A stretch of 64,000 bases of DNA from Paragordius varius (lineage: Eukaryota; Animalia; Nematomorpha). A program made the translations under genes and the position numbers. The stretch spans positions 3,286,001-3,350,000 of the forward strand of contig OZ176057.1 in the NCBI GenBank assembly GCA_964247055.1. The letters are read 5' to 3'. The notes below the pieces were generated by a model. The model had not been told where the DNA came from. It searched no databases and was given only the letters and a program-made list of their open reading frames with translations. Shown in pieces: positions 16,141-62,560 of the stretch (positions are counted from its first letter, which is position 1; every line of letters begins with the position of its first letter).

Positions 16141-19100
16141 TCATTTCCGTTGCTTTGTCATGTCTTTCCCAATATTTGCTTTAATTTTCAATGTGGATCT
16201 ACGTGTAGGCCCTACCGTTCTTGCGTTTGCAGAATCATTCGTGTTAACAGTTGTTTGTTGTGAAACGGTACAAGTTTCAGCCTTATTTATTGTCATATTA
16301 GTATTGCTTTGGATGATATAATCTGAATAATTTGCTCCGTTGATTGATGTTTTATCCACATTTGCGTGTAATAATTTATTTAACATGGTAAGGTCAGGTT
16401 TTTGATCGTTGGGAAAAGCGACGGATAATAAGCCTTGGTTGTTGGTCGTATTATCATTATCAGATGTATTTGTATTGTTGCTAAGATTTAAGGTAGGTAA
16501 ATTATCTTTCCCTTTATTATTGTCCACCATAACTACAACATGGTCGTCAATGTCAAATTCTGTTTTAACCACGGGTACTAATGGTATTACATTAAGAGAT
16601 GACCCATTATTTATGTTGGCAGTGATGGATTTTAATCGTTTTCTCCGCGGAGACGTTGGTGATAAGGTATGGGGTGATTTGATTTTTGGATTAGTGTTAT
16701 GATTTAAATTACTAGTATCAGATGTATAATCTTTTTTTGTTCGTGTTGAGATAATGAATTGCATTAATACATTATACTCTTCAATCTGCTTCTCCAAAGA
16801 ATATTTATGACTAATATTATTGTTAGTAGCAGGGTTGTTAGCAGACGCCAAAAATTTTTGGACACCCTTGACCCAAGTTTGTTTATTAATTTTATTGTCA
16901 TCAGTATTTTTATTATCATTACCATAATAATTGTTGATTGTGATATCAAACTTTTTGAAATTTTTATGATTTTTAACCACATCAAGCAAATGTTTTAACG
17001 TTATCATTCTAAACGATAGATTATTTTTATCAATAATCTCATTACTTTCATAATCAAAGGTATTATTATTATTATTATTATTGGGATGTGAAAGATTTGT
17101 AGTTGTCTCATTATCTAATCCATACTTTAAACACCATCCCTGTATGGTTGGGGTAAGTTTTCTGTTTGAATAAATAAGATTTATTTAAATGTATAGAGAC
17201 AATAAATGATATTAACTATTACATACTTAAGTTCAGCAATTCCTTCAAATATTTTTGTCAAATCCGTAGTAGGTAATTCAGGAAAATATTGTTTAACATC
17301 CATTCTTGTCAGGTAAAATGGTAAAGATCTATATATTAATATAGTAAAGGCTTGTAATTATAATATATAATTATAAAAAGTTTGAAACATTTTAAATTTC
17401 TTGTTAAATTACAATTTATACTTTGAATTCAGAGATTTCGTGGTACCAACCAAAGATGTAGGGTGGTTAATATTATCAAAATGCATATTATGATAAGTTT
17501 CACCAACATCAAAACAGTACAGAATAAAATCTCTGGCTTGTAAACACAAATGTTCAATCAACAGTTTTTGTGTTTCAAGTCTTGAAATACGATTGTTATT
17601 TGAGTTGGTATTATTATTATGGTTACTATTAAGATTATTTCTGTTACGTAAATTGCATAGTTTAGGTAAGGCAGTTGTATTGATATTGGCTAAATTTCCA
17701 TCTATTTTATTATTGGTAGTAATTATATTAGATTGTGTTGCATCCTTTACACTTGAATCAAGTTTAATTTCGTCTTTATTATTTGCAACCGGTGAATTAT
17801 ATAGATATTGACTATAATAAAGAATATATATGGCATTAAGCAGGTAATGTGAATCAAAATTTAAAAAAGCTGCAATTTTAAAAATCTCATTTTCCAAAAA
17901 AAATAATACCAATTTTAAATTAAATATAAAATATAGTATATATTACGATTCAGCAGTTAGTTTCCAAATATTTTGAATTTAACAACAGGCTTATAAAAAT
18001 GATGACCAGAAATATGGTTGCTGGAAAAGATAACATTCTTTAAAAATGCAGCTACTTTTTAATCATTATTAAAATTTTATATTTTTATAAATCCCTCAAA
18101 TTAACTATAATAAATATATATTAAATTTTACAAAAAAAATAAGGTAATAAAAAACATTTAGTAAATGTCCTTTTTACCAAATAAATATATGATTTACCTT
18201 TTTATAACCCAATTCCCGGCACAAACCGTAGCGATAGTGTCAAGATATTCAATAATCGCTCTTTTAAGCTTTAATTTTTCGCGAATACTCAAATTAATAT
18301 TATTATTCCCAGTTTCATTATTGGTTTTATTTGTATCAGCACACAAATATCGGCTTAAAAAATGATCCCATATAATGGAAAATGGCAATATTTGTGCTAA
18401 AATCAAATAAAAAAAAATTATTTCATTTCACGTTTAAAGTAAGATAAATAATAAAATTGTATAGTATGGGATTTAATACCATTTACTATTTTATAAAAAA
18501 TTTATACGTAAAGTATGATATACGAACAACATAAATTTTTGGAAAATATTAATCAGCAAATTTTTATGGTTTCATACTGTAAATACTAAAAAAATCGATT
18601 AATTTTGTTTTTAACAGTAATCAACGCATTTATAATCAGAACTGATATCAATATAAAGCAAGTTAAAACATCAACCCAGCCAAAATGAACCAACACGGGA
18701 GAATAATGTGAAAATATCGTTAAACAAAGCGGAAAAATGCCATAAGGATAAAATATAAATACAATTAAGTTGTTATTCAGTCATAAAGTCAACAATGGTA
18801 AAATTAATTATTTACATTTTCTAACCATAATTTAATTTATTTGACTCTTACATTAGCGATTTAAAAAAAAATTAAAAAAAATTAGCGGCAAATTTAAGAT
18901 GAAGATATTTATATACTCATTTTTAACAAAAATTTTATAATATAATACGCCTGTGGGCTAAAGAAAGCATATTTTTAAACTCGGATGGATTACTTTTTAA
19001 GATATTTAAATTTTATTGCAGAAATATAAAACTACCCCAAAAGATAATGGTGTGTCAAAAACTGTGATTGAAATTTCATTGCTAGTTTAATTATCCACAG

Positions 19101-22100
19101 AGTGTTTACAGTAGAAAGTAATATGATTATAGAAATTGGTGCATATAAAAAAATCCTTTTTTTTAGCCAATAAAATTATCCAATGTTGTGCGGCAATAAT
19201 TGAAAAAAAAACAATAAAGTAGAGGACAAACTGTAAACCTATATATAATTTTACCAATCAATTTTTTGATCGCTTTTTAAAAATTTTTTCACACATACAT
19301 AAAATAATGATGTAAATACTGATCAAATAACAAAAAAATAGAAAAACAAGTATTACCTCGTTGTAAAAGCTCAAAAATCATGGTAAAACAAAACGGTTGA
19401 TCCACCACCGATTTTTGTGAGCGTGCCAATATTTGGTGTGCATTATTATTAATGTAATTATGTTGTTTGGGTTTAAGGCATGAACTTAATGATGTTGATT
19501 TATTCAAAAGTCGGGATAAAAGTTGAGCTATTTCACTATTGTTGGGGTTATTGGTTTTAATTTTTTCTAAACTGCTGTCAACTTTTTCGGGAAAAGGGAC
19601 AGTCACCATTAAAGGTTTTAGCAAAGTGTTCATGTACAAAATGGGCTTAGATTTTATTTCTGAACCATTATCTAACATGGTTGATTCAGATTTGGAATTG
19701 CTGGAATGATTTCTTAATTTATCATTGCCTTCATGAGGTAATGTTTGGTATTGACAGGGTAATATGGATTGTGAATAACTTGTGGTAACCAAATTTTCAA
19801 TGTACTTCATTTTCATAAAATACAATTTTGAGTAAAAAAAACGAGCTTTAAAATATTAAATCATTAATATATTATGCTTGCAATTATATGGGGTAAAATG
19901 TAATAAAAATGTTAAAAATTAACGTGTAAACACCCCCGGAATATGATTAAAGGAAACTGTATGTGACAAAGTAAACATTGAAAAAAAATGTATGTAAATA
20001 TTGATTTACCCTACGATACTATTTTAAGGTAAAAACGCAAACGCACATGTTAATATAAATTGAAACATTTATAAAGGGATAAAAATTAACCCCCCCCCCC
20101 ACTCCTGATATGAAAAATGCATGGCTCAATATTCGCATCATGACCGTTTTATTACTAAAAAAAGGATTCGTATTTAATAAACATTTTAACATTAACTAAT
20201 AATTATATTTTCTTCATTGATATTAAAGAGTATACAAAGAGATACCATTAACAGCTCAATTTCACCCTTGAACAATTTAAATTCACCTTCGAGCAATTCA
20301 TATTTAGCCAAAATAAATTATGTGTTTTTGTTGAAAATTACCTATATTTCTAATATTTTTAAGAAATGAAATTTATTTAAAGTTAACATTATATTGAAAA
20401 TATTATAGGCTATATGCTATAAAGAAATAATTCATATTAATAATGAGTTATATTAGCCCGAAAACACATAATTTATTTTAGGGTGAATTGTTTAAGAGAA
20501 AATTGAGGTGTAAATGGTATATAATTCAATCAATAAAATTAATGCAAATTTGATTTAAAATTACAATTTTTCGCTCTAAAAAATGGACAACAATCAGCAT
20601 ATGTAAGTTAATATATTTGCAATTATTTTTAAATTATGATTGTAGAGTCTAGAAAATAAACAAAAATTAGCATAGGAAGGTTAACAATAATTTATATTGG
20701 CAAACTTTAAAATATCAATTATAACAAAGAATGAAATTGTATAAAAATATTTTATCACTCGATTATCTCGGCCCAGGTAAGTCAAATCTATCCAGGTATG
20801 CTTATCATTAGCATTATTATTGTTAGTATATCCTGCCTCTATCATATCCAGCGATTTAAAATGCATTTTATCCAAAGGTATCAGGCTAAAATATATAGAT
20901 TATGCTAATATATCAATGTTTGGGACTAAACTAAATCAAATTTATTCATATATACCATTTGAAGTTCAGATTTACCATCCAACAATTCAAATTCACCCTA
21001 AAAATATTTTATGTGTTTTCAAACTATCTTTGTTAATATAAAATATATCTTTATGACATAGTTTATTATTTTTCAGTATTATTATTTTAAAAATTTATTT
21101 TTAAAAATATAAAAAATATTAGTAATTTTTAATCTTTAAAAACATATGAATTATTTTAGGGTAATTTTATATTGTTCAAGGGTGAATTTGAATTGTTCAA
21201 GGGTAAATTTGAATTGTTCAAGGGTGAATTTGAATGGTTTAAGGGTAAATTTGTTAAATGGTATATATTTGGGCGTTACAATACTTCGGCTTATAATAAA
21301 TATTTGAACAATTATGGTTAAAACATTAGAAAAAACACATATTTTTTTAAAACCTAGAAAGAAAATTATATATAATAAATATGCGAAAACAACTCTCATT
21401 TTTAATCACTTTTAAATTGTCATATTAAAAGGTTTTTAGGCATTTTACGAAATTTAGTGGTTATTATGTTTTGTGATGATTCTTATATATTGTTTTATCA
21501 AAATACTTAAATACAGGGTGAGATATCAAATGTAAACGTTAAACCTCGTTAAATTTCCCACAAAAACAATTTATAACGTCACCGAAAAACGATGGATACA
21601 AATAGTTTTAGGGTACCGTTAATAAAAGTATTTTGGAAAAAAAATTTTAACATGAATAATTTGTGTTTTCTTTAAACATTTCCACAAGAAATATAAATAA
21701 AATTTTATCTTGTGAAGGTGTTATTCTTATGATCTAGCTTGTTAAATTCTTTAAAGAATTGTTACGTCACCGAAAAACGATAAAATAGGGGTGCCGTTAA
21801 TAAATTTTTAACATGAAGGTATTATTTTTATGATCTAGTCGTGAAAAATTCTCCAAAAAAAGTTTCTAACGTCACCGAAAAACGATGAATACAAATCATT
21901 TTAGGGTGCCGTTAATAAAAATTTTTTTGGAAATTTTGTAATCACAAATATGCTGATCATGAATGGCTATTGTGCAATTACTTTGTGTTTGTTAAGGAAT
22001 TATGTTGACCTAAATCATTTGTTTGAACATTTTCCCCGGAAGATTTGCTATCAGTCGCAGAGTTTTGCTTCTGTTGTGATAGTTCCCACGTTTTGATATT

Positions 22101-24257
22101 TTGTGTAGCAAATTTAACATTAATCACTTCAGTTTTTATTGTTTCATTATATTCGGAGTCAGGATTAAGATCCATTTCTTCGTCAGGATTCGCGTCGAAA
22201 ATGTCACGATCTGTAAATTAATAAAAAAAATATATGGTTTTTACCATTATACTAATCCATTTCATAATATAAGAAACAAACTCATCATAATTCGTTATAC
22301 ATTTACAACAGAGTTAAAAAAAGCTATTAAAATTTTCGATTACATTTTATTGACATTTAGAGTATTTTAGAATCATGGATTCAAAATATTCTAAAAATAA
22401 CCATTATATTGGGTTAATAATATAGCTTTTATCATTAAAAATTAACAATAATTTTTGATGCCAAATATTTTTTTATTATCAATATATAGTCATGTATCCT
22501 TTATTTTATCAAAAATTTATTTCGTTGAATGGGTATAAATATTTTGTTAAAGAGTGGAAAAAACAAGAGCTCTATGACAATGACAATATCATATTCATCA
22601 ATGAAGTAAAAGAAGTGTGGGAGAAAGGCGTCGAAAATCATATGTGGTAAAGTGTGATTTATAATGAGAATACATTAAGAATTTTATCTTTAAATTAATG
22701 TTAAAGGAGTACGGAATTATACATATAAGATTTTCGACGCCTTTCTCCCAAACTTTTTTTATTTTTTTAATAAATATTTAATACCATAAAACTCTTGATT
22801 TTCCATTCTCAAAAATTTTTAATTTAAGAAAAAAATTAAATATATAAAGGATACATGACTTTAATAAAAAATACATTAAATTAAAAATTAGTTTTATAGT
22901 GTACATTAAAGTAATTGATCGATTCAGAAATAACAGTTTAACATTGGTTTTCTTTATTAAAAATACGAACTAAGATTTGTTTTGTAAAATTTTTATATAT
23001 GCATACATGTATTGGTTCGATAATTTTGAAATAACAAAATTAACTTTTAATATAATATTTTAATAAAATATTCCCTCTTTGACCAAAATATATTATATAT
23101 TTGAAAAAAATGTTTAAATATAATTAAATATATAACTATAGTTAAAAAAGTCGTGGGCAATTAATTATGTGCAAAAACTAACAAGGTATATTTGAGTTTT
23201 TTGACATTAACCATATCAAATCAAAAAACAAATTCCTCCCATTATGGCGGTAATAAATAAATTTAGTGATCTCAAATTTAATTTGATAATTTAGATATGA
23301 GTAAGTTTGATATCAAAATAAGATAATGAGCTCAAAAAATTCGGTAGACATCACTGCAAACGACAAATATTAAACAAAAGGGCGTTGATCAGGAACTGAA
23401 AATATGAAAAACCTTTGATATATCAATATTAATTCATTTTATTTAATGGGCCTTTTCATATTGATAAAAAAGTAGCGCAAAATGTTGAGAGGCCCAAGTT
23501 GTTACAAATATCTTTTAATATAAAGGCAATATCTTTTAATGTTAAAATTATATTCGCGACAGTTTATAATAGTTACTTGTCAAATAATTTATTAGCAAAA
23601 GCAAACTGTAAAGAGTTTAATGTCACTATGCAAGTAATACCTTTGTTTTTGGAAACGGCAAAAGAGGACGATTTATCCAAATAATTTAGGGTAGGTTTGA
23701 GTTCCAAAATGTGACTGATAGGTAATAAATAGAGAACACCTATAATTCATATATGAATAAAAAATGTAATTTATCATTATTAAACCATTAAACGTATGAA
23801 ACTAAAAAAATTTACCAAGCTTAAAAACACCAATAAACTCTTCATTCCCATTAACTGAACTTGCGGAATGAGTAGTAAATACTTTTCTACAATTTTTAAA
23901 TTTATTTGATACTTTTCCAAATATTTGGAGGTATGAGATAAATCTTTGGCCATAGCATTTTTGGAAAAGGCTTCTCCCTTCATTTTATCATAGTTATTGT
24001 TATGCATATCATATAGCATACTTAATTCAATCTTAAGTATATTAAAAGGGGTAAATACTTGGTCCTTTTTGCGCGAAATTTTGGCTGTATCAATATTTTC
24101 GGACCCAAAATCAAAATTAAGCGGTTTACTTCCAAACTAAAAAATTAAAAAAATTAACTTGAAGCAAATATAGAGAAAATTGAGGATCGGAAACCACCAA
24201 AACATCAATCTAAAATTAATCAAACTTTACTTCAGATATCACATTGGATATTGTCAT
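16141..24257 (-). CDS. POLR3E: DNA-directed RNA polymerase III subunit RPC5 (Sin-like)
   Basis: Exons (minus strand): 24257-24231, 24209-24159, 24136-24059, 24031-23913, 23886-23816, 23739-23641, 22210-21982, 20885-~20759, ~19845-19357, 18396-18198, 17811-17422, 17328-17227, 17161-16141 (TGA). The spliced product MTISNVISE/IDVLVVSDPQFSLYLLQ/FGSKPLNFDFGSENIDTAKISRKKDQ/IELSMLYDMHNNNYDKMKGE..GVLYLLPISHILELKPTLNYLDK..INVKFA..HTWIDLTYLG..AQILPF..AGNWVIKSQYLY..QARDFILYCF..QGWCLKY matches recalled RPC5 motifs (EIDVYL, NPNY..KGE, GELHLTP..ILQLRPSFSYLDK, GNWVVKS, GRDFV). The exon 8/9 junction is uncertain. Confidence 0.9.
21514..21930 (+). repeat. Mariner-like end (TA|CAGGGTG) followed by three diverged internal repeats
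   Basis: ACGTCACCGAAAAACGAT..GGGTGCCGTTAATAAA at ~21576, ~21765 and ~21868. Confidence 0.6.
22489..22859. repeat. Palindromic (foldback) MITE-like repeat
   Basis: GTCATGTATCCTTT / AAAGGATACATGAC and GGGAGAAAGGCGTCGAAAATC / GATTTTCGACGCCTTTCTCCC inverted pairs; one arm recurs at ~37070-37170. Confidence 0.7.
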
Positions 24258-24317
24258 GGTACCGAACTATAAGGTGTGATAGTTCCACCGTATTTTTTGA
24301 AAAAATCTGTAAATTAA

Positions 24318-24893
24318 CACTTCGATTCAAATTGGGGTATATAAAAACCCAAATTAAATATAAATTAATATTTTTAAAAATTACTGAAGGAAATGCCCCA
24401 ATTTAAATTTATGCTTCTATCCTGATAAAAATTATAAAAATATGCCAAAATAACTTGATAAAATTTTGTTTTGAAAAAAAAGTTCAATCTCAAACTACTT
24501 CGACGCCATTTTTATTTTACAAAATTTTTGCAAAATATAGTCTTTATTTAATTTAAGGGTAAAACTAAAGCTAATTTTTTTATATTATTTACATCTAACA
24601 TTGATAGAAGTAGAAAAAGAGGTTTATTTCGTATTATTTTTAAATTTTACCATTTGACACATGTCACGTTGTCGAAATTTTTAGCTTTTGGTTTTAGCTT
24701 AATATAAGTAATATCAAGTATTTTTGAATAATTTTTTTTTATATATTTCGGTTTATTAATGTTATATAAGTGCAAAATTTTGCCATGGTTTCAAATATTT
24801 CCATTTTAAAATATTTGATTTTAAACAGGCCTGGGGTATCCAACTACCCCAATTTGAATCGAAAGACTAAAATAAGTGTGTTGTATCCAAGTG
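24318..24893. mobile_element. TTAA-flanked (piggyBac-like) non-autonomous element just upstream of POLR3E
   Basis: TTAA|CACTT ... AAGTG|TTAA, plus the subterminal inverted segment TTCGATTCAAATTGGGGTA at ~24321 and (reverse complement) ~24845-24863. Confidence 0.55.
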
Positions 24894-39397: not shown

Positions 39398-42300
39398 ATG
39401 GAAAATATGGAACCAGTACCTACATCAAAGTTGATAGAGGCAGCCCGAGATCAATTATTAACTCTGACATCGACATATTCTAACAACCACAATAATCATT
39501 TAGTTAAAACCACTTATCATACCAATAATAACAATAATTTATCGTGCGATAATATGCGTATTACAGAAGCTATTAAAAAGAACAATGACCATCAAATACT
39601 GCTGAATAACCAAAATATAAGCTATGACACCAATTCATTATCTGACACAATTCCTGGCATCCATGCACTAAAATGGGCAACAAATCTCAATTCTCTCCTT
39701 CTTGATCCGGATGGTGTTAAGGCATTCACTTTTTATTTGGGGTCCGAGGGATATTCCGATAAACCATTGATGTTTATTTTTGCTGTACGTGGACTTAAAA
39801 AACGGAATGCTACGTTAATTGAAGACTTGCAAAATGGCAAAGATTTGTTTTCTCAAAACTGTGATGAACAACAACTCGTTGATAATAAAGATGAACACAT
39901 GTCACTACTCAGGCGTCGAATAAAGGCAATCTACCGTACATTTCTTCGTAGTAATACGGTCGTCAATAATAATTCTTGCAATGATAAAACATCAATTCAT
40001 TCCTCATCAAGTACTAATCTGTCCTGTTCCACGAGCCCATGTCTTCCAATTAATGCAGAGTGTCGCAAACATGTACGTGAAACCATAAATCAACTTTTTT
40101 ATTCTGCACACCAAAATAACAATCTTCTTCAACAGGATATTAATGGTTTTGTTTCAACATCTCAAAGTTCTTCTAATATTATTGATTTGATTAAACAGTA
40201 TACAGATATATTTGATGAAGCATTAGCACAAACGGAAAAACATTTAGCTGAAACGCATTATCGCAATTTCTTGAAATCTGACGTTTATCTTTCTCAACTC
40301 AGGGGTCAACAGTTGCCTGGTGATTGTTATCCTCCTAATAATAAAGTTCTACCAATCGAAAATACTTCCCAAAATGTTTCCAACTCTGATAATTCAGGTC
40401 TCCAAAATTCCACAAATTGCTCCACTTTGTCACGTGGTCGCAAAAAGGAAACAGACGATGTGCCAACAATGTTGACCACACAATCGTCTGCCCTTGTTAA
40501 CAACAATAAAATTTTATTATCCACATCAACAACAAAATATACGGAATGGGTTATGACAGCAAGTTCCGATAATTTAACGACAACATCGGGATCAGAATTC
40601 CTGGAGCTGCAACCCAGGGAAGAAAATCTACCTGGTAGTAATTATTGTGAAAAGATTCCAATTCCCGGCAATCAAAATAGCACGATAGAAAAAAAGATTC
40701 ACCACAAAGATAGTAATAATAATATGCCAATAAACAATAAAACGGTTACGGCACATGTACGAAAAGGTTCCATTCACACCAAACTACCCTCATCAAACGT
40801 GAATGCTACCACATCTCAAGAAACTGATCCTCTAACCTTTATACCGGTAATAGTTTTTAACCTTCGATTAATTTGTAAAAGTTAATACTAAGAAATTTAT
40901 TTGAATAATAGTAGCCACAATTAATAGTCATTTTTAGCTTGTATTTGTTTATAAATTATGTTGGATACAAAGTTAAAACATTATTGCGAATTAAGTTGCA
41001 TAAAATCTCAATTAAAATATTGGGATTGTGCTCATTTTTTATATATTTAACATTAAGAAATTGCAACAACCACAAAACACGATGCCACCCTCAGATCCCA
41101 AAATATTTGCTGCTTTGCTAACTGCTAAACTTAATAACTTATTAAACACTTCAAATGCAACACAGCTGAACAGTCGAACGATCAATAAGGATACAATTCA
41201 AACGACCAAGTATACAACATATATAAGTTTCTATAATGTAATAGATATAAATTCGGTTTTCCCATATATTAATACGATAAAAACCATATGCTGTTTAGAT
41301 CATTAAGTTTGACATCAACTCAAATAAAATTTGATAGTTCCCATCATGCCAACGCTAAAACCAGCTGTCGCTCTACAAATCTCGTTGATAACGAGGAAGC
41401 GGAAACAAGTCAAAGTATTTTGGATGATCACGTGAGCCGCGTATGGGCCGAAGAGGAACCACCGGTTGCCATGACAACCATACGGAAACAACTGACACAA
41501 GGTGCTGGTGGGATCGGTGACACAGTCCAGTCTTCTTCCAACCACAATAGCAATCATACCGATAAGGCTTTAAAGTACACATTGTTAAAATAATTTATCA
41601 TATAAAATGTTCCAAAAAAAAATTTTGCTGAAAAACCGCTTATTGTGGGTATATGTATTCCTGCATAAACTTATTGCATTTGTTAACAACATAGTTTTGT
41701 GTTTGTATTCGTGATTTCTTTTTTAAACACGGTCTTGCAGAAAAAATAAACTTAACCTTTTACTTCACATCGTTAATTTTAACTTTCAATGTTATGAATT
41801 GGTGTTCAATATATCAAACGGTTTAGTGATTGATATATTTTGAGTTTACTATAAAAAATATAAGAATATCGGTTACATGCAGCTTTAGCATAACAGATTA
41901 TAACTTGATTTACAACATCTAATTGTTTGTCTGGTATTATTGTGGTAAAATTAACAAATTACTTTTTTTTTCTAAAAGTATATCAAATTGAACTTTATAT
42001 GTTTTTGTTAGACCTTTTTATGCATTATCACATATATTGATATTGTTTTAGAATCCAAAATTGGTTGGACCGTGTTGCGACTTACGATGTATGCCCTCCA
42101 CAACAATTTGTCACCCAAAAAACTAATATCAAAAATAATTATCAAGATGATATATCTGCCATATCTGCACACTCGTCCTCATCCGTTTGCAATAATAACA
42201 ATAATAGTAAAAATTATAGTAATAGCGGTTACCATGGCAACTCCACCAATAATTCTCTAGTTTTACTGGGTGGCGCCAAATCGACCCAAACACATTGTAC

Positions 42301-52106: not shown

Positions 52107-53925
52107 CAGTGGTACTCACCAAAAAAATGTGACGGGCCAAATAAAATATATTTTTTTTTCGAGGGCCATGAACCTGAATATGGCAAATATTCCATAGCTA
52201 TTTGACACATATGCACATATTTAACTCTAAATCAGCACAATGAATTTTTTGCGGATCGCATGTAAATCCAGCTAAAAACGCGTTTTGCACCATTTAGTTT
52301 AAAAAATTAAATATTTTGATAACATTTATTTTGATATTCAATAATTTTTGACAAATTCGGTTTCGCCTCATGACAGGCCAATTTTAACATGTCGTCCATT
52401 TGATTCGGTTAAGCGATTTATGTATGTATTCTTGACATATTTCATTTTTGAATGTGCCGTCTCACACGTGTAAGTTGAGGGAAAAACAGTTAGGATAACT
52501 TACATTTTTAATATTTTCATATTTATTTTGCACATCTTGCCAAAACCCACATCTTTCTTCGCTATGATTTCCTTGAATATAGACTCCGAATTAGAATAAT
52601 TATTAGAATCTATGAATTCTATGATATGCGCCTGATCAAAACCGAAATGTTCAAGTTGCTTTTTATTGGATATATCCATATGCCATGACAATGAGTTATA
52701 ATGAATTTTTAAATATTTCCTTCTCGAATTTTAACTCATTAGATAGAAATGTTAAATGAATGTCTGTATTAAATTAATCTCCGCAGTAAATTCCATCTTT
52801 TCTTCATGAATCGTTTTAAGTGTTAGAAAATATGAGAGTGTATTTATATAATCTTGTTTATATATATTATTAATTTTTCTTCAAAAGCAAATATTTTAAT
52901 AGCAAATTGGGTTATTATTTTCCCTTGAAGACTTGTATTTTAGTAATGTCGCAAAGGCCGGCTAATAATCAGAAGTTGTTTTAAACGGAGGTTTATTTCT
53001 CTGCCACGGATGTGTTTAACTATATCCACTACGTTTTAGTTACTGAATTGGGTGATTCATCTTTTACACGCGAAACCAAGTTTTGCTGATGAATAAAGCA
53101 GGGAAAGGATAAAATATTTTGCAAATTATTTTGTTTTTTCAAAGACGAATAAATTTTTTGTTTATTCCAATCATAGAGGGACAGCCACCTGTGCAGATAC
53201 CAATATAGATATACCATTATTATCGTAAAAAGTTCTAATTATTTCGAGAAAATCGATTTCTTTCGTGTATTCTTCATTGGTAAAAATTTTAAATATTCCT
53301 CGTTGATTATGTTGTCCTTATATATGAGGCAGGTAACAACATTTTTATTTAAAACGACAAAAAAATTTTCTTCCCATTCTTTTATAAAGGAACGATTTTC
53401 ATCGGATAATTTACGTTTTTTACCATTAGATGTTATTCATTGAATTTATGTTTAAATATTATGTAAATTTTTTCAAAAAAATAGGAATATAATCTGAATT
53501 ATGCTATAAAAAAACAGGCGAAATTTAATGATCTTGATTTGAAAAATATTTATGGGCAGTTATTAAAAATGCAGGATAGCAATGAAAAGAATATGTATAT
53601 GGAAGTTTGGGTGAAAGGCTTGCTTAAATACAAAAAAAAATGGAATAAAAATTTCAAAATAGAAAAGAAAATAGAATACAGAGAAACAACGTATGCCAAA
53701 ATTTTAAAATCATTTTTATGTAGAGAAATTTTTCTACATTTCAAATTGGGTAAAAAATAAAACAAAATTAATTTTAAAGAAAATAGATTAATATTAAAAT
53801 AAGCGAAAATTTGTTTATGTGTACATCAATAAAAAAATAATTTAAGTATCAATATGGTCATAGGGCAATTTTAAAGCACTCTTAGGGCCGCATGCGGCCC
53901 GCGGGCCGCGGTTTGAGTATCACTG
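52107..53925 (-). mobile_element. Non-autonomous hAT DNA transposon (Buster/Charlie/SPIN-like), copy 1
   Basis: TIRs CAGTGGTACTCA / TGAGTATCACTG, perfect 8-bp TSD CAGTAGGG, subterminal GCGGCCCGCGGGCCGCATGCGGCCC, and a minus-strand transposase remnant with CFIHQQNL (CxxH motif). Confidence 0.93.
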
Positions 53926-54224: not shown

Positions 54225-54542
54225 TGTTAGAGTGTAACTGACAGGCTAATTTGAATAGACCTGTTATTACACGATTAGGTTAAACACACATCATCCGTTA
54301 TATATCAGTACATTAACCTATTAACTTATCTGTATACTATAATTATATTATTATAACCTCCCCACCACTTGTGAATATCATTATTATACCTTGAGATAAT
54401 TGTATATAAGCAAACATCTCACCTTGATATATGTGAATACATTAAACCTAATTATCTTATATATATATATATATATATAGATCATGATATAACGCATGGT
54501 TTTTGTGATATACAATATATACATTGTCGTCCCCAGATAATA
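54225..54542 (+). repeat. 5' LTR of the younger Gypsy element
   Basis: Direct repeat of 58484-58836, differing by about 7 substitutions, small indels and (TA)n length; ends TG...TA. Confidence 0.95.
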
Positions 54543-54561
54543 TTGGTGGCCAAAACAAGAT

Positions 54562-57500
54562 ATGACAGACGAACCAATGAACACCACAGCTCCTCATGCT
54601 AGTATTGCGAATTTAGCCATAGAAAAATATAACGATAATAATAAATTTGAAGAGTACCTCGAGTATATTAGCAACGTACTCGAGGCAAAGGATATTCCAG
54701 TAACCGAAAGAACGCTTAAATCAACGATACTAGCATATGGCGGATTCATGATAGTAAGAAAGATTAACCAACACCTATACCCCAAGAAAATAAAAGACGC
54801 CACATGGGCGGAGATCACGGAAACAGGCAAAAAAATATTCAATCCGACATAATCAAAATTCCAAGGTCGTTTTGAATTTTATAGGCTGACGCAACGAGGG
54901 TGAAAGTTTTATCCAATTCCTTGAGCGTGTCAAGATAGGAGCTGAAGAAGCTCAATTTACTGAAGCCATAGAACAACGTATTCGTGATGCATTCGTAATA
55001 GGACTGCGACAGCCTCAACTAGAGATGGATATCCATTCCAGGTATCCAGATGCTTTGATAAACGGTATTCCTGTTCCACTAACAATCGTAGATCTCGCAC
55101 TAGCACATTAGTCTGCTAAGGCTGGATTACAAAATAACAATAATAGTAATAACAATAGCAATCGATACAGTAGCAATAATAATATCAATCGGTTACAACA
55201 TAATAAATTCAATCGACAAACAATAATAAAACCTTCTACCACATGTAAATATTGCGGCACCACACACCCACCCAACAAGTGTCCAGCCTGGAGACGATCC
55301 TGCAACAAATACGGAAAGCTGAACCATGTGTGGCCAAAAGACAAAGACCCAACTTCAATAGGCAATTGTTGAAGGAAATTAACGTGGGTCATAAGGCGCT
55401 AACTCCCTTACTGATAACACTAGTAATAAACGGGTTAAAAAAAGTTTTTATATATGATACCGGTTCGGACATTAGTGTAATAAACTTTGCCACATGGGAG
55501 CAAATCGGTAAACCCAAGCTGCGTCCGACACCCCCAGTAAAATCGTACAACAATACCACAGTGCCAATGATGGGGACAGCAAGTGTCAAGGTCCAGGTAA
55601 ATGGTAAACAAATGGCCGGGGACATATGTGTCCTATGCAAAACGATGGGGATGGCCCCGCTAATCTGTGGACTGGACTGGATGGCGAAATTCCAGATCGA
55701 GATGCCACAGGTTAAAGTTAATTATCTTAAATTGAATGAGATTTGTGAAAATTTTAAAAATTTATTCGAAAATAAGTCAGGGTGTTATAAGGACCCTGTA
55801 AAAATTCGCATTGCAGGGAATGCGATCCCGAAAATATGGCCATGTCGCAGGGTGCCTTTTCCATTAAGAGAAAAGGTGGAGAAAGAGCTGACGAGGCTAG
55901 AAAAGTTAGGCATTTTAGAACCGGTTGATCCTAACACCACACCTGTGACATGGGCCACGCCTACGGTTAATGTACTTAAACCGAATGGCGAATTAAGAAT
56001 ATGTAGTGATTTTCGGGTAACGATTAATAAGTGGTTGCAAGAAGACTCCCACATAATTCCCGCGTTTGATGAGTTGGTATCGAAAATAGGTGAAGGTATC
56101 ACATTCACGAAAATTGATTTAAAAGATGCTTACCTCCAGATGCCAGTGGCAGAGGAGTGTCAAGAATTGTTAACTATCTCAACACATAAAGGTTTTTTTA
56201 GATACAAACGCATGCCGTTTGGACTGGCCACGGCACCTATCATCTTCCAAAGAGTGATGGAACAAGTGCTGGCTGGAAGTTCGGGAACTTGCGTTATTTA
56301 GATGACGTCCTAGTGACTGGTAGGACGGAAAATGAGCACATTAACAATTTAAATAACGTATTAAGTCGTCTTGATAAGGCCGGATTTAAATTAAGACAAG
56401 ATAAAATAATGATAGGCGCAGAATCAGTAAACTATTTAGGGTTTGAAATATCGAAAAAGGGTATAAGCCCGTGTGAAAGCAAACTCAAAACAATTAAGGA
56501 ACTAAAAAGGCCGGTAGATAAAAAGTCGTTACGTAGTTTTTTAGGTTTTTTGACATTTCATGAACGCTTTATACCAAAATTACAAATGATAGTCGGTCCC
56601 TTACATGAATTAACTAGTAAAAATACGAGATGGTGTTGGACCGAGAAACATGAGGAAAGCTGGTTAGCAGCTAAGAATCTGTTAAGCGAAAAATTGTTTT
56701 TAACACCATATAATTCGAATAGGAAATTGATAATAGAAACTGATGCGTCAGATTTAGGATTCGGATGTATTCTAAGTCATGAAGTTAATAGTGAAAGGTT
56801 ACCGATAGCGTATGCCTCACAAAAGTGTAGCAACGCTGAAAGGATTTATTCCACTATAGAGAAGGAATTAAAAGCAATATTATTTGCGTTACGAAAGTTT
56901 CATAGTTTCATATATGGTAGAAAATTTATAATATTAACTGACCATTTACCTTTAGTAAAGTTATTAAATAGAGATCGAAATTTAAAAGAGATACATAATG
57001 CTAAAATACCTAGGTGGATTAATATGATAAATGAATACGACTTTAATATAAGTCATCAAAAAGAGGCTCAAAATAGAGCTGATTATTTATCGAGATGGCC
57101 GATTGACGAGATCGTTGCCTATGATGAAGATTATGCGACCAGATATTTGAGATTTTTGAATTGTCATAACGTGCGGTTAAGCAGAGATGAAATTAGAAAA
57201 GAAACATTAGATTCAGTATTACAAAAAGTAATTAAAGCGTTAAACAACCATGACTGGAGTTCTCCAGAATTAAAAAAGTTTGTAAACCGTAAAGACGAGT
57301 TGGCATATCAATATGGCTTATTAAGTTTAAATGATCGGATTGTAATTCCGAAACCCCTCCAAAAAAAGGTGGTGAGATACCTACACAGCGGGCATAACAA
57401 CGTAGAGACCATGAAAGCGATGGCCAGATTTACGTGTTATTGGCCAGAATTAGAAAATGACCTGGTAAAAGCCAGTAGTCAATGCGAATCGTGCCACGTA

Positions 57501-58470
57501 GTAGGCCGAATGTCACTCAGAATTCCACGTATCAGTGGGATCATAATGTTGCTGTGTGGGAGCGTTTGCATATTGATATAGCCGGACCGGTAGACGGTTT
57601 GTATTGGTTGTTGATAATTGATAGTGCCTCGAAATGGGCAGAAGGATTTATGTTGAAAAAGGTAACCGCAGCGAATATCCACAAATTAGAAGAAACGTTT
57701 GCAAGGTTTGGTTTGCAAGAGAGATCGTGAGCGATAACGCTTCGTACTTCAGTAACAAGTACTTTACGTCAACCTTAAGTACGTTAGGGGTGAAACATAT
57801 TAAGGTTACCCCCTACCACCCTAAGAGTAATGGGATGGTAGAAAGGTTAGTAGGTACAATAAAAAATAAATATAAAAGAATAAAAAATAATGGGTTATCC
57901 ACCCACGAAGCGTTTAACACTAGCTTATGGGCGTATAGAAATTCTATACACTCAACAACGAAAGATACCCTGGCCCAGTTAATGTTTAAGCGTACCCCCC
58001 ATACGCCCTTAACCTGGTTAAATAGTAGGGAGAGATTGTTAGATGCACCGGCCCCCCGACGGCAGTTTGCCATTAATGACCAGGTAATGATTAAAAATGA
58101 ATTAAGTCCAGGGTGGCGCACCGGAGAGATTACGGACCGTACAGGGTTATTTTCATACAAGGTATGGGACAAGAACCGAGACAAAGTTGTGAGGAAACAC
58201 GCTGACCAAATAGTACAACAACCACAACCACAGCCGACCACTGCCAGCAACACAAATGAGGAGGAGGTAACCACTGCCACGGATGATGGAACAATCGCTG
58301 AAACGCAACCAAACACGATCAATTCAAGGGACGAAATCGAACTTACTCCGACAGCCGAAAGTCCAAATAATAATAATAGCCAGAAACCTGAGACTATCTA
58401 CTCCCCCGCTAAAACACAAGAACGGCGGTACCCGACAAGAAATCGGCAGAAACCTGCCCGCTTTCGTTAG
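54562..58470 (+). pseudogene. gag-pol of the younger Gypsy element, broken by stops and frameshifts
   Basis: ORF pieces 54562-54852, 55252-56301, 56289-57581, 57482-57730 and 57634-58470 join into one gag-PR-RT-RH-IN polyprotein only through frameshifts (for example at ~56290, just before YLDD) and in-frame stops in gag. Confidence 0.9.
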
Positions 58471-58483
58471 GGGGGGGAAGTGA

Positions 58484-58717
58484 TGTTAGAGTGTAACTGA
58501 CAGGCTAATTTGAATAGACCTGTTATTACACGATTAGGGTAAACACACAACATTCGTTATATATCAGTACATTAACCTATTAACTTATCTGTATACTATT
58601 ATTATATTATTATAACCTCCCCACCACTTGTGAATATTATTATTATACCTTGAGATAATTGTATATAAGCAAACATCTCACCTTGATAAATGTGAATACA
58701 TTAAACCTAATTATCTT

Positions 58718-60738: not shown

Positions 60739-62560
60739 CAGTGGTACTCACCAAAAAAATGTGACGGGCCAAATAAAATATATTTTTTTTTCGAGGGCCA
60801 TGAACCTGAATATGGCAAATATTCCATAGCTATTTGACACATATGCACATATTTAACTCTAAATCAGCACAATGAATTTTTTGCGGATCGCATGTAAATC
60901 CAGCTAAAAACGCGTTTTGCACCATTTAGTTTAAAAAATTAAATATTTTGATAACATTTATTTTGATATTCAATAATTTTTGACAAATTCGGTTTCGCCT
61001 CATGACAGGCCAATTTTAACATGTCGTCCATTTGATTCGGTTAAGCGATTTATGTATGTATTCTTGACATATTTCATTTTTGAATGTGCCGTCTCACACG
61101 TGTAAGTTGAGGGAAAAACAGTTAGGATAACTTACATTTTTAATATTTTCATATTTATTTTGCACATCTTGCCAAAACCCACATCTTTCTTCGCTATGAT
61201 TTCCTTGAATATAGACTCCGAATTAGAATAATTATTAGAATCTATGAATTCTATGATATGCGCCTGATCAAAACCGAAATGTTCAAGTTGCTTTTTATTG
61301 GATATATCCATATGCCATGACAATGAGTTATAATGAATTTTTAAATATTTCCTTCTCGAATTTTAACTCATTAGATAGAAATGTTAAATGAATGTCTGTA
61401 TTAAATTAATCTCCGCAGTAAATTCCATCTTTTCTTCATGAATCGTTTTAAGTGTTAGAAAATATGAGAGTGTATTTATATAATCTTGTTTATATATATT
61501 ATTAATTTTTCTTCAAAAGCAAATATTTTAATAGCAAATTGGGTTATTATTTTCCCTTGAAGACTTGTATTTTAGTAATGTCGCAAAGGCCGGCTAATAA
61601 TCAGAAGTTGTTTTAAACGGAGGTTTATTTCTCTGCCACGGATGTGTTTAACTATATCCACTACGTTTTAGTTACTGAATTGGGTGATTCATCTTTTACA
61701 CGCGAAACCAAGTTTTGCTGATGAATAAAGCAGGGAAAGGATAAAATATTTTGCAAATTATTTTGTTTTTTCAAAGACGAATAAATTTTTTGTTTATTCC
61801 AATCATAGAGGGACAGCCACCTGTGCAGATACCAATATAGATATACCATTATTATCGTAAAAAGTTCTAATTATTTCGAGAAAATCGATTTCTTTCGTGT
61901 ATTCTTCATTGGTAAAAATTTTAAATATTCCTCGTTGATTATGTTGTCCTTATATATGAGGCAGGTAACAACATTTTTATTTAAAACGACAAAAAAATTT
62001 TCTTCCCATTCTTTTATAAAGGAACGATTTTCATCGGATAATTTACGTTTTTTACCATTAGATGTTATTCATTGAATTTATGTTTAAATATTATGTAAAT
62101 TTTTTCAAAAAAATAGGAATATAATCTGAATTATGCTATAAAAAAACAGGCGAAATTTAATGATCTTGATTTGAAAAATATTTATGGGCAGTTATTAAAA
62201 ATGATGCAGGATAGCAATGAAAAGAATATGTATATGGAAGTTTGGGTGAAAGGCTTGCTTAAATACAAAAAAAAATGGAATAAAAATTTCAAAATAGAAA
62301 AGAAAATAGAATACAGAGAAACAACGTATGCCAAAATTTTAAAATCATTTTTATGTAGAGAAATTTTTCTACATTTCAAATTGGGTAAAAAATAAAACAA
62401 AATTAATTTTAAAGAAAATAGATTAATATTAAAATAAGCGAAAATTTGTTTATGTGTACATCAATAAAAAAATAATTTAAGTATCAATATGGTCATAGGG
62501 CAATTTTAAAGCACTCTTAGGGCCGCATGCGGCCCGCGGGCCGCGGTTTGAGTATCACTG
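60739..62560 (-). mobile_element. Non-autonomous hAT DNA transposon (Buster/Charlie/SPIN-like), copy 2
   Basis: Near-identical to 52107-53925 (a 3-nt insertion at ~62201 is visible), with a different perfect 8-bp TSD ATCTACAC. Confidence 0.93.

Follow-up and report, generated by a model that had tools for sequence, protein, structure and literature searches.

Among unicellular eukaryotes, GT-AG introns of minute size have long been familiar, measuring about 20–30 nt in Paramecium, about 15 nt in Stentor and 18–21 nt in the nucleomorphs of chlorarachniophytes; we know of no positional bias among the tiny introns of ciliates and nucleomorphs. The XBP1/HAC1 intron (23–26 nt in animals) is of a different nature, being a single intron in a single gene which is spliced by IRE1 in the cytoplasm, without the spliceosome, and which is characterized by stem-loops with CNG motifs. 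In the dicyemid mesozoan Dicyema japonicum, the mean intron length is 38 bp (PMC6736024). The monogenean flatworm Gyrodactylus salaris shows a bimodal distribution of intron lengths, with a mode of about 32 bp found mainly at intron positions 1 and 2, longer introns following further along the gene, and tapeworms likewise have a bimodal intron distribution (PMC4040987). Here we describe the 5' end of the POLR3E (RPC5) gene of the horsehair worm Paragordius varius, located on the minus strand of a 64,000-nt stretch of contig OZ176057.1 (assembly GCA_964247055.1, positions 3,286,001–3,350,000; hereafter the window, whose first nucleotide is position 1). Four segments of 21, 22, 27 and 26 nt, to which an earlier reading of the stretch (the original prediction) had drawn attention, are very probably genuine spliceosomal GT-AG introns of a functional POLR3E gene.

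A class of short, 5'-biased introns beside long introns has published precedent in Gyrodactylus, and the background assumed in the original prediction, namely that introns this short occur only where they dominate the genome, was incomplete in this respect, G. salaris being the counter-precedent (PMC4040987). Like Gyrodactylus, the locus presents discrete size classes of putatively spliceosomal introns with the shortest at the first positions, here for one gene. It differs from the flatworm in the size of the short class (21–27 nt versus about 32 nt), in the number of positions concerned (four in succession versus one or two), and in its host, which is an ecdysozoan. With Dicyema it shares the presence, in an animal, of apparently spliceosomal introns much shorter than the minimum usual in animals; in Dicyema, however, short introns are the rule in a reduced genome of 67.5 Mb, whereas the same Paragordius gene holds an intron of 1,430 nt on repeated DNA. 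The GT-AG introns of 15–30 nt in ciliates and nucleomorphs are removed by the spliceosome, so that such lengths are physically possible, but their hosts are unicellular and nearly all of their introns are tiny. The XBP1/HAC1 intron is similar in length to the four segments, which in contrast have GT..AG ends and no CNG motifs. A literature search revealed no link between hairworms and introns; since the principal paper on the genomes of nematomorphs (Cunha et al. 2023) was outside its coverage, prior publication is possible.

The four segments were found exactly where the original prediction had placed them, with the lengths, sequences and termini it had given; all of them start with GT and end with AG. 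Their excision creates an open reading frame (ORF) of 115 codons which starts at the ATG at 24257 and continues via an intron of 76 nt into exon 6. Exon 1 (24231–24257, 27 nt) consists of the ATG and eight further codons, the final residues V-I-S-E being aligned to V-V-Q-E of human RPC5 (residues 9–12). It is followed by micro-intron 1 (24210–24230, 21 nt, phase 0), in which the in-frame TAA reported previously is accompanied by an in-frame TAG. Exon 2 (24159–24209, 51 nt), aligned to the human segment IDVYL...LYLFQ, and exon 3 (24059–24136, 78 nt), both of the sizes predicted, are separated by micro-intron 2 (24137–24158, 22 nt, phase 0), retention of which would shift the frame. Micro-intron 3 (24032–24058, 27 nt, phase 0) is in frame and stop-free. 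Exon 4 (23913–24031, 119 nt) leads to micro-intron 4 (23887–23912, 26 nt, phase 2), which is frameshifting, as micro-intron 2 is and as had been claimed for both. Downstream of exon 5 (23816–23886, 71 nt), intron 5 (23740–23815, 76 nt, phase 1) is an ordinary short intron, and exon 6 (23641–23739, 99 nt) codes for the conserved L(R/K)P..YLDK motif of RPC5.

To compare the predicted spliced product with known proteins, the translations of joined exons 1–4 (60 aa) and joined exons 4–6 (96 aa) were used as queries against the Pfam profile RPC5 (PF04801) and human RPC5 (PDB). Exons 1–4 matched the Pfam profile with an E value of 1e-4 (22.2 bits), residues 5–57 being aligned to profile positions 4–56 and thus covering equal spans, and they aligned without gaps to residues 9–63 of human RPC5. 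Exons 4–6 matched profile positions 53–143 with an E value of 1e-12 and 48.5 bits (gathering cut-off, 23.1), and residues 56–146 of the human protein with an E value of 3e-8, again gap-free at the junction of micro-intron 4 and at that of the 76-nt intron. Taken together, the alignments to human RPC5 run across all five junctions without a gap, that of micro-intron 3 reading KQQK|VELEM in the human sequence, and the two Pfam alignments share a common register (residues 53–54 corresponding to profile positions 52–53). In the PDB search with exons 4–6, human RPC5 was the sole significant match, while yeast RPC5 appeared weakly, among matches at chance level. The claim that excision restores a gap-free N-terminus of RPC5 is thus borne out by both references, and the homology supports all four predicted micro-introns, the conceptual product being colinear with RPC5.

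The unspliced ORF pieces covering exons 2–4, searched against Pfam and PDB, did not return RPC5; apart from a weakly matching later exon, the sole piece of the gene to do so unaided was exon 6 (profile positions 119–143; residues 122–146 of human RPC5). Exon 7 showed no match in Pfam or PDB. An exon of 188 aa from this gene gave no match among 1.84 billion representative proteins, and a genomic ORF of 118 aa gave none in a word-indexed protein search, the length range of which excludes full-length RPC5.

Contigs of three DNA sequencing runs were placed on 23300–24800: X1, X3, which represents another sample, and X5, which is filed under another species label. The X1 contigs are identical to the window, and X1 may be the assembly's own sample. 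From X3, one contig of 907 nt spans 23430–24336 with six substitutions and no insertions or deletions (indels), and the X5 contigs are nearly identical to the window, with no gaps and with all four segments present. Contigs of all three runs thus cover the four segments without indels, micro-intron 1, for instance, being unaltered in each. What is read here is genuine DNA, shared by several individuals; the assembly errors which the original prediction had considered as an alternative are contradicted by the X3 and X5 contigs. Sequence depth is even across exons, introns and flank, and no joint skipping a segment occurs among the best-supported joints listed for the three runs, although contigs can hide rare forms. 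Both observations indicate that the runs are DNA and argue against excision at the DNA level.

Over 23609–24318, X5 differs from the window at three positions, all of them within 24003–24188. The run is probably derived from the same species or from a mislabelled sample. Misidentification of species in public data of Chordodes hairworms has been described in a 2026 preprint, which may or may not concern the runs used here.

Six of the seven variable sites are exonic, while the seventh (24144) is situated within micro-intron 2 and leaves its length the same. Read in the spliced frame, five of the six exonic single-nucleotide polymorphisms (SNPs) are synonymous third-position changes, among them the one at 24113 in exon 3, and the remaining one replaces L by I; the chance of at least five of six sites falling on codon position 3 is 0.018. 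In exon 5, the frame of which is set by excision of the 26-nt micro-intron 4, each of the three SNPs is synonymous. The spliced reading frame is the frame under selection. In GC content the micro-introns (18%) are likewise distinct from the exons (33%), micro-intron 3 having the highest value of the four (26%), between intron and exon values; the GC content of the window is about 28%.

Removal of the segments from RNA, and the nature of the machinery responsible, are inferred from the sequence. Most likely, the ordinary major spliceosome would remove them, with recognition of each tiny intron as one unit (intron definition). In that case, the branch adenosine would be located about 7–12 nt before the AG, near the physical minimum for a lariat, and an intron of 21 nt would offer room for hardly more than the donor hexamer, the branch site and the branch-to-AG distance. 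The donors are preceded by AA, so that the boundaries read AA|GT... and ...AG|A or T. Adenosines are present 7–12 nt before each AG, within a TAAT in three of the four segments, and a run of T precedes the AG in two of four. The SNP at 24144, carried by X3 and X5, turns the TAAT located 8–11 nt before the AG of micro-intron 2 into TAAC, which is more branch-site-like. An A at −8 occurs in two of the four segments and a T-R-A-Y motif at exactly −9 to −6 in one, so that neither is a strict rule for these introns. An 8-nt direct repeat around micro-intron 4, AAAAGTAT, with the copies 30 nt apart, was considered and rejected; by a rough estimate, it is within chance for this composition.

Several points weigh against spliceosomal removal of all four segments. 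Sampled sequence words of the stretch were absent from RNA runs under the same species label (two run searches, in which all holders of the words were DNA-like), and no contig of a fourth run, X6, could be placed on the stretch. The donor sites, GTAAAG, GTTAAT, GTATTT and GTATCA, are weak, and no branch motif stands out clearly above chance for a sequence of 82% A+T. If four GT..AG deletions are allowed freely, at least 115 codons are obtained from 8% of ATGs picked at random in the window, so that the ORF test by itself is not significant. Exon 1, and hence micro-intron 1, which is the least supported of the four, depends on about five aligned residues. Finally, micro-intron 3, being in frame and stop-free, could stay in some or all transcripts.

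Measured from the ATG, the donors of the four micro-introns (21, 22, 27 and 26 nt) are found at +27, +99, +199 and +345, whereas those of introns 5 (76 nt) and 6 (1,430 nt) are found at +442 and +617. The shortest size class is thus confined to the 346 nt that follow the ATG of this one gene, and both size regimes postulated in the original prediction (21–27 nt versus 76 and 1,430 nt) coexist within it. The 5' clustering of micro-introns is real in POLR3E. Of the later introns, that of 76 nt was predicted correctly, while the one described as about 1 kb extends from 23640 to 22211 and actually measures 1,430 nt. This intron 6 (phase 1) is partly multi-copy DNA, as evident from variant multi-copy contigs over 23300–23615.

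The clustering might have no mechanistic meaning even if the introns are real: ancient introns may have shrunk everywhere, the distal ones having been re-inflated by transposons and insertions near promoters having been selected against. We regard this account as a serious one, albeit with a likelihood somewhat short of even. It agrees with the size of intron 6 and its position on repeated DNA, and with a genome packed with repeats, one of which (24319–24800) extends on the upstream side to 62 nt from the ATG of POLR3E; moreover, the positional bias in Gyrodactylus is likewise without known mechanism. The summed contig depth in X1 is 10^5–10^6 over this upstream element, a very high-copy repeat, compared with about 600 over the gene, and self-BLAST revealed no second copy of it in the window. 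The POLR3E promoter must lie within the 62-nt gap or inside the repeat. On the other hand, those distal introns whose length leaves no room for a complete transposon, namely intron 5 of POLR3E (76 nt) and intron 2 of Axin (about 89 nt), are not reduced to about 25 nt, although the sample is very small.

Axin (39398–41298) is the one usable test of position elsewhere in the window. Its first exon comprises 1,449 nt, so that intron 1 (40847–41057, 211 nt) starts at +1,449 from the ATG; intron 2 measures about 89 nt. Intron 1 of Axin, first in rank but remote from the 5' end, is thus not tiny. This single case hints at distance to the 5' end, and not rank, as the relevant factor, the bias in Gyrodactylus being described by rank, with the reservation that an upstream Axin exon may have been missed. 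NPL4 enters the window at about position 81 of its zinc-finger profile, its 5' end thus being located outside; as far as NPL4 is concerned, the statement that no intron of NPL4 or Axin is shorter than 75 nt is therefore of little value for 5' ends.

With the reservation that the sample is very small, the distal lengths agree with a minimum intron size that depends on position. Because distal introns free of repeats stop at about 65–90 nt and not at 25 nt, we give slight preference to a constraint set by how far an intron is from the 5' end of the transcript, over pure drift. An attractive version of such a constraint would be a cap-proximal regime for mini-introns, as put forward in the original prediction, or a promoter-proximal one. 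In its strict form, such a constraint would mean that introns below about 30 nt can be removed only within a few hundred nucleotides of the transcript 5' end, while about 65 nt or more would be needed downstream, possibly because the cap-binding complex or RNA polymerase II in its early phase assists removal; we consider this strict form rather unlikely. The minus strand holds an acceptor-like sequence, CCTTATAG, at 24262–24275, some 10 nt before the ATG, which might belong to an intron in the 5' untranslated region or be a trans-splice acceptor. An Rfam scan of the window gave no match of any kind, and thus neither small nuclear RNA genes nor spliced-leader genes.

With respect to micro-intron 3, it is conceivable that only the three other introns are obligatory and that the 27-nt segment is coding or alternatively retained, adding nine residues after the KKDQ motif. 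Because it is in frame and stop-free, the frame cannot decide, and it is the homology that does. Besides a length divisible by three, the tolerance of RPC5 towards variation in loop length is compatible with a coding role, and the spacing between residue 57 and the anchor in exon 6 loosely fits either version. However, keeping the segment lowers the Pfam score from 22.2 to 18.3 bits, the alignment then ending at the junction, and no residues of human RPC5 correspond to it. The segment also has GT..AG ends, and its GC content is intermediate rather than exon-like. Retention of micro-intron 3 as coding sequence is therefore considered improbable, and excision of all four segments remains the preferred interpretation.

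Much less probable still is a decaying pseudogene or an assembly artefact, in which case the supposed introns would be small frame-breaking insertions. In favour of it, RNA support for the gene is lacking, and long ORFs can fairly often be built from random sequence when GT..AG deletions are free. Yet the four segments recur with the same lengths in a second individual and in the run bearing another species label, all four have GT and AG at their ends, and, read in the spliced frame, the great majority of the exonic SNPs are synonymous. The spliced product is moreover gap-free against human RPC5, with colinearity that continues through exon 6 and, by a weak Pfam match of a later exon and by eye for exon 7, possibly beyond.

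The least probable alternative, non-spliceosomal removal by IRE1-type cleavage, translational bypassing or somatic DNA excision in the manner of the internal eliminated sequences (IESs) of ciliates, draws on the resemblance in length of segments of 21–27 nt to the XBP1 intron and to short IESs of Paramecium and on the fact that the removal step itself is unobserved, but it is hardly reconcilable with GT..AG ends in four of four segments, with the lack of CNG/CNG loop motifs and TA..TA ends, and with continuous contigs in three DNA runs without a skipping joint among those listed, and a special mechanism for four sites in one housekeeping gene would be unparsimonious. An IRE1-type intron was rejected on the basis of the boundaries, which lack a CNG|CNG motif, and a ciliate-type IES on the basis of ends that are GT..AG and not TA, no excised form occurring among the listed joints of the three DNA runs. 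Spliceosomal excision hence is retained as the interpretation of the locus.

Downstream of intron 6, exon 7 (21982–22210, minus strand, 229 nt) codes for an acidic stretch followed by a V.V.F segment; its frame fits phase 1 after exon 6, and its similarity to RPC5 was recognized by eye. A later candidate RPC5 exon (18197–18427, minus strand) matches positions 280–328 of the Pfam RPC5 profile weakly (E value, 0.23), and the gene probably extends over at least 6 kb. Inside a long intron of POLR3E, a tandem repeat at 21154–21405 codes for FKFTLEQ-like units on both strands and is probably part of a transposon. As neighbouring genes in the window, NPL4 and Axin were confirmed. Two near-identical blocks at 52503–53825 and 61135–62460 have their ORFs in common and lie on either side of gag/pol-like ORFs (54500–58500); the arrangement looks like a long terminal repeat retrotransposon with repeats of about 1.3 kb. 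Further integrase and reverse-transcriptase fragments occur at 59–60 kb.

Common gene predictors and read mappers do not accept introns below a set length, which is about 39 nt for AUGUSTUS and 21 nt for STAR, and under such limits, genes like POLR3E of Paragordius would be broken or truncated. It is thus possible that the gene loss reported for the phylum is in part a product of annotation. The GC content published for the horsehair worm Gordionus montsenyensis, 26.93%, is close to that of the window, and for a horsehair-worm assembly that matches in GC content, the publication gives a BUSCO completeness of only 71.6% and does not mention introns.

Judged from sequence and homology, the POLR3E locus is a well-supported example of ultra-short introns clustered at the 5' end of a gene. 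If confirmed at the RNA level, these introns would be among the shortest of any animal, in a repeat-rich genome and beside introns of kilobase size, and ultra-short introns would be extended to a lineage beyond dicyemids and flatworms. The layout of the gene, with four micro-introns within 346 nt followed by introns of 76 and 1,430 nt, may be used to probe how constraints on splicing depend on distance from the promoter; should removal of the shortest introns indeed be limited to the vicinity of the transcript 5' end, intron size limits set by promoter distance would provide a direct natural read-out of co-transcriptional splicing.

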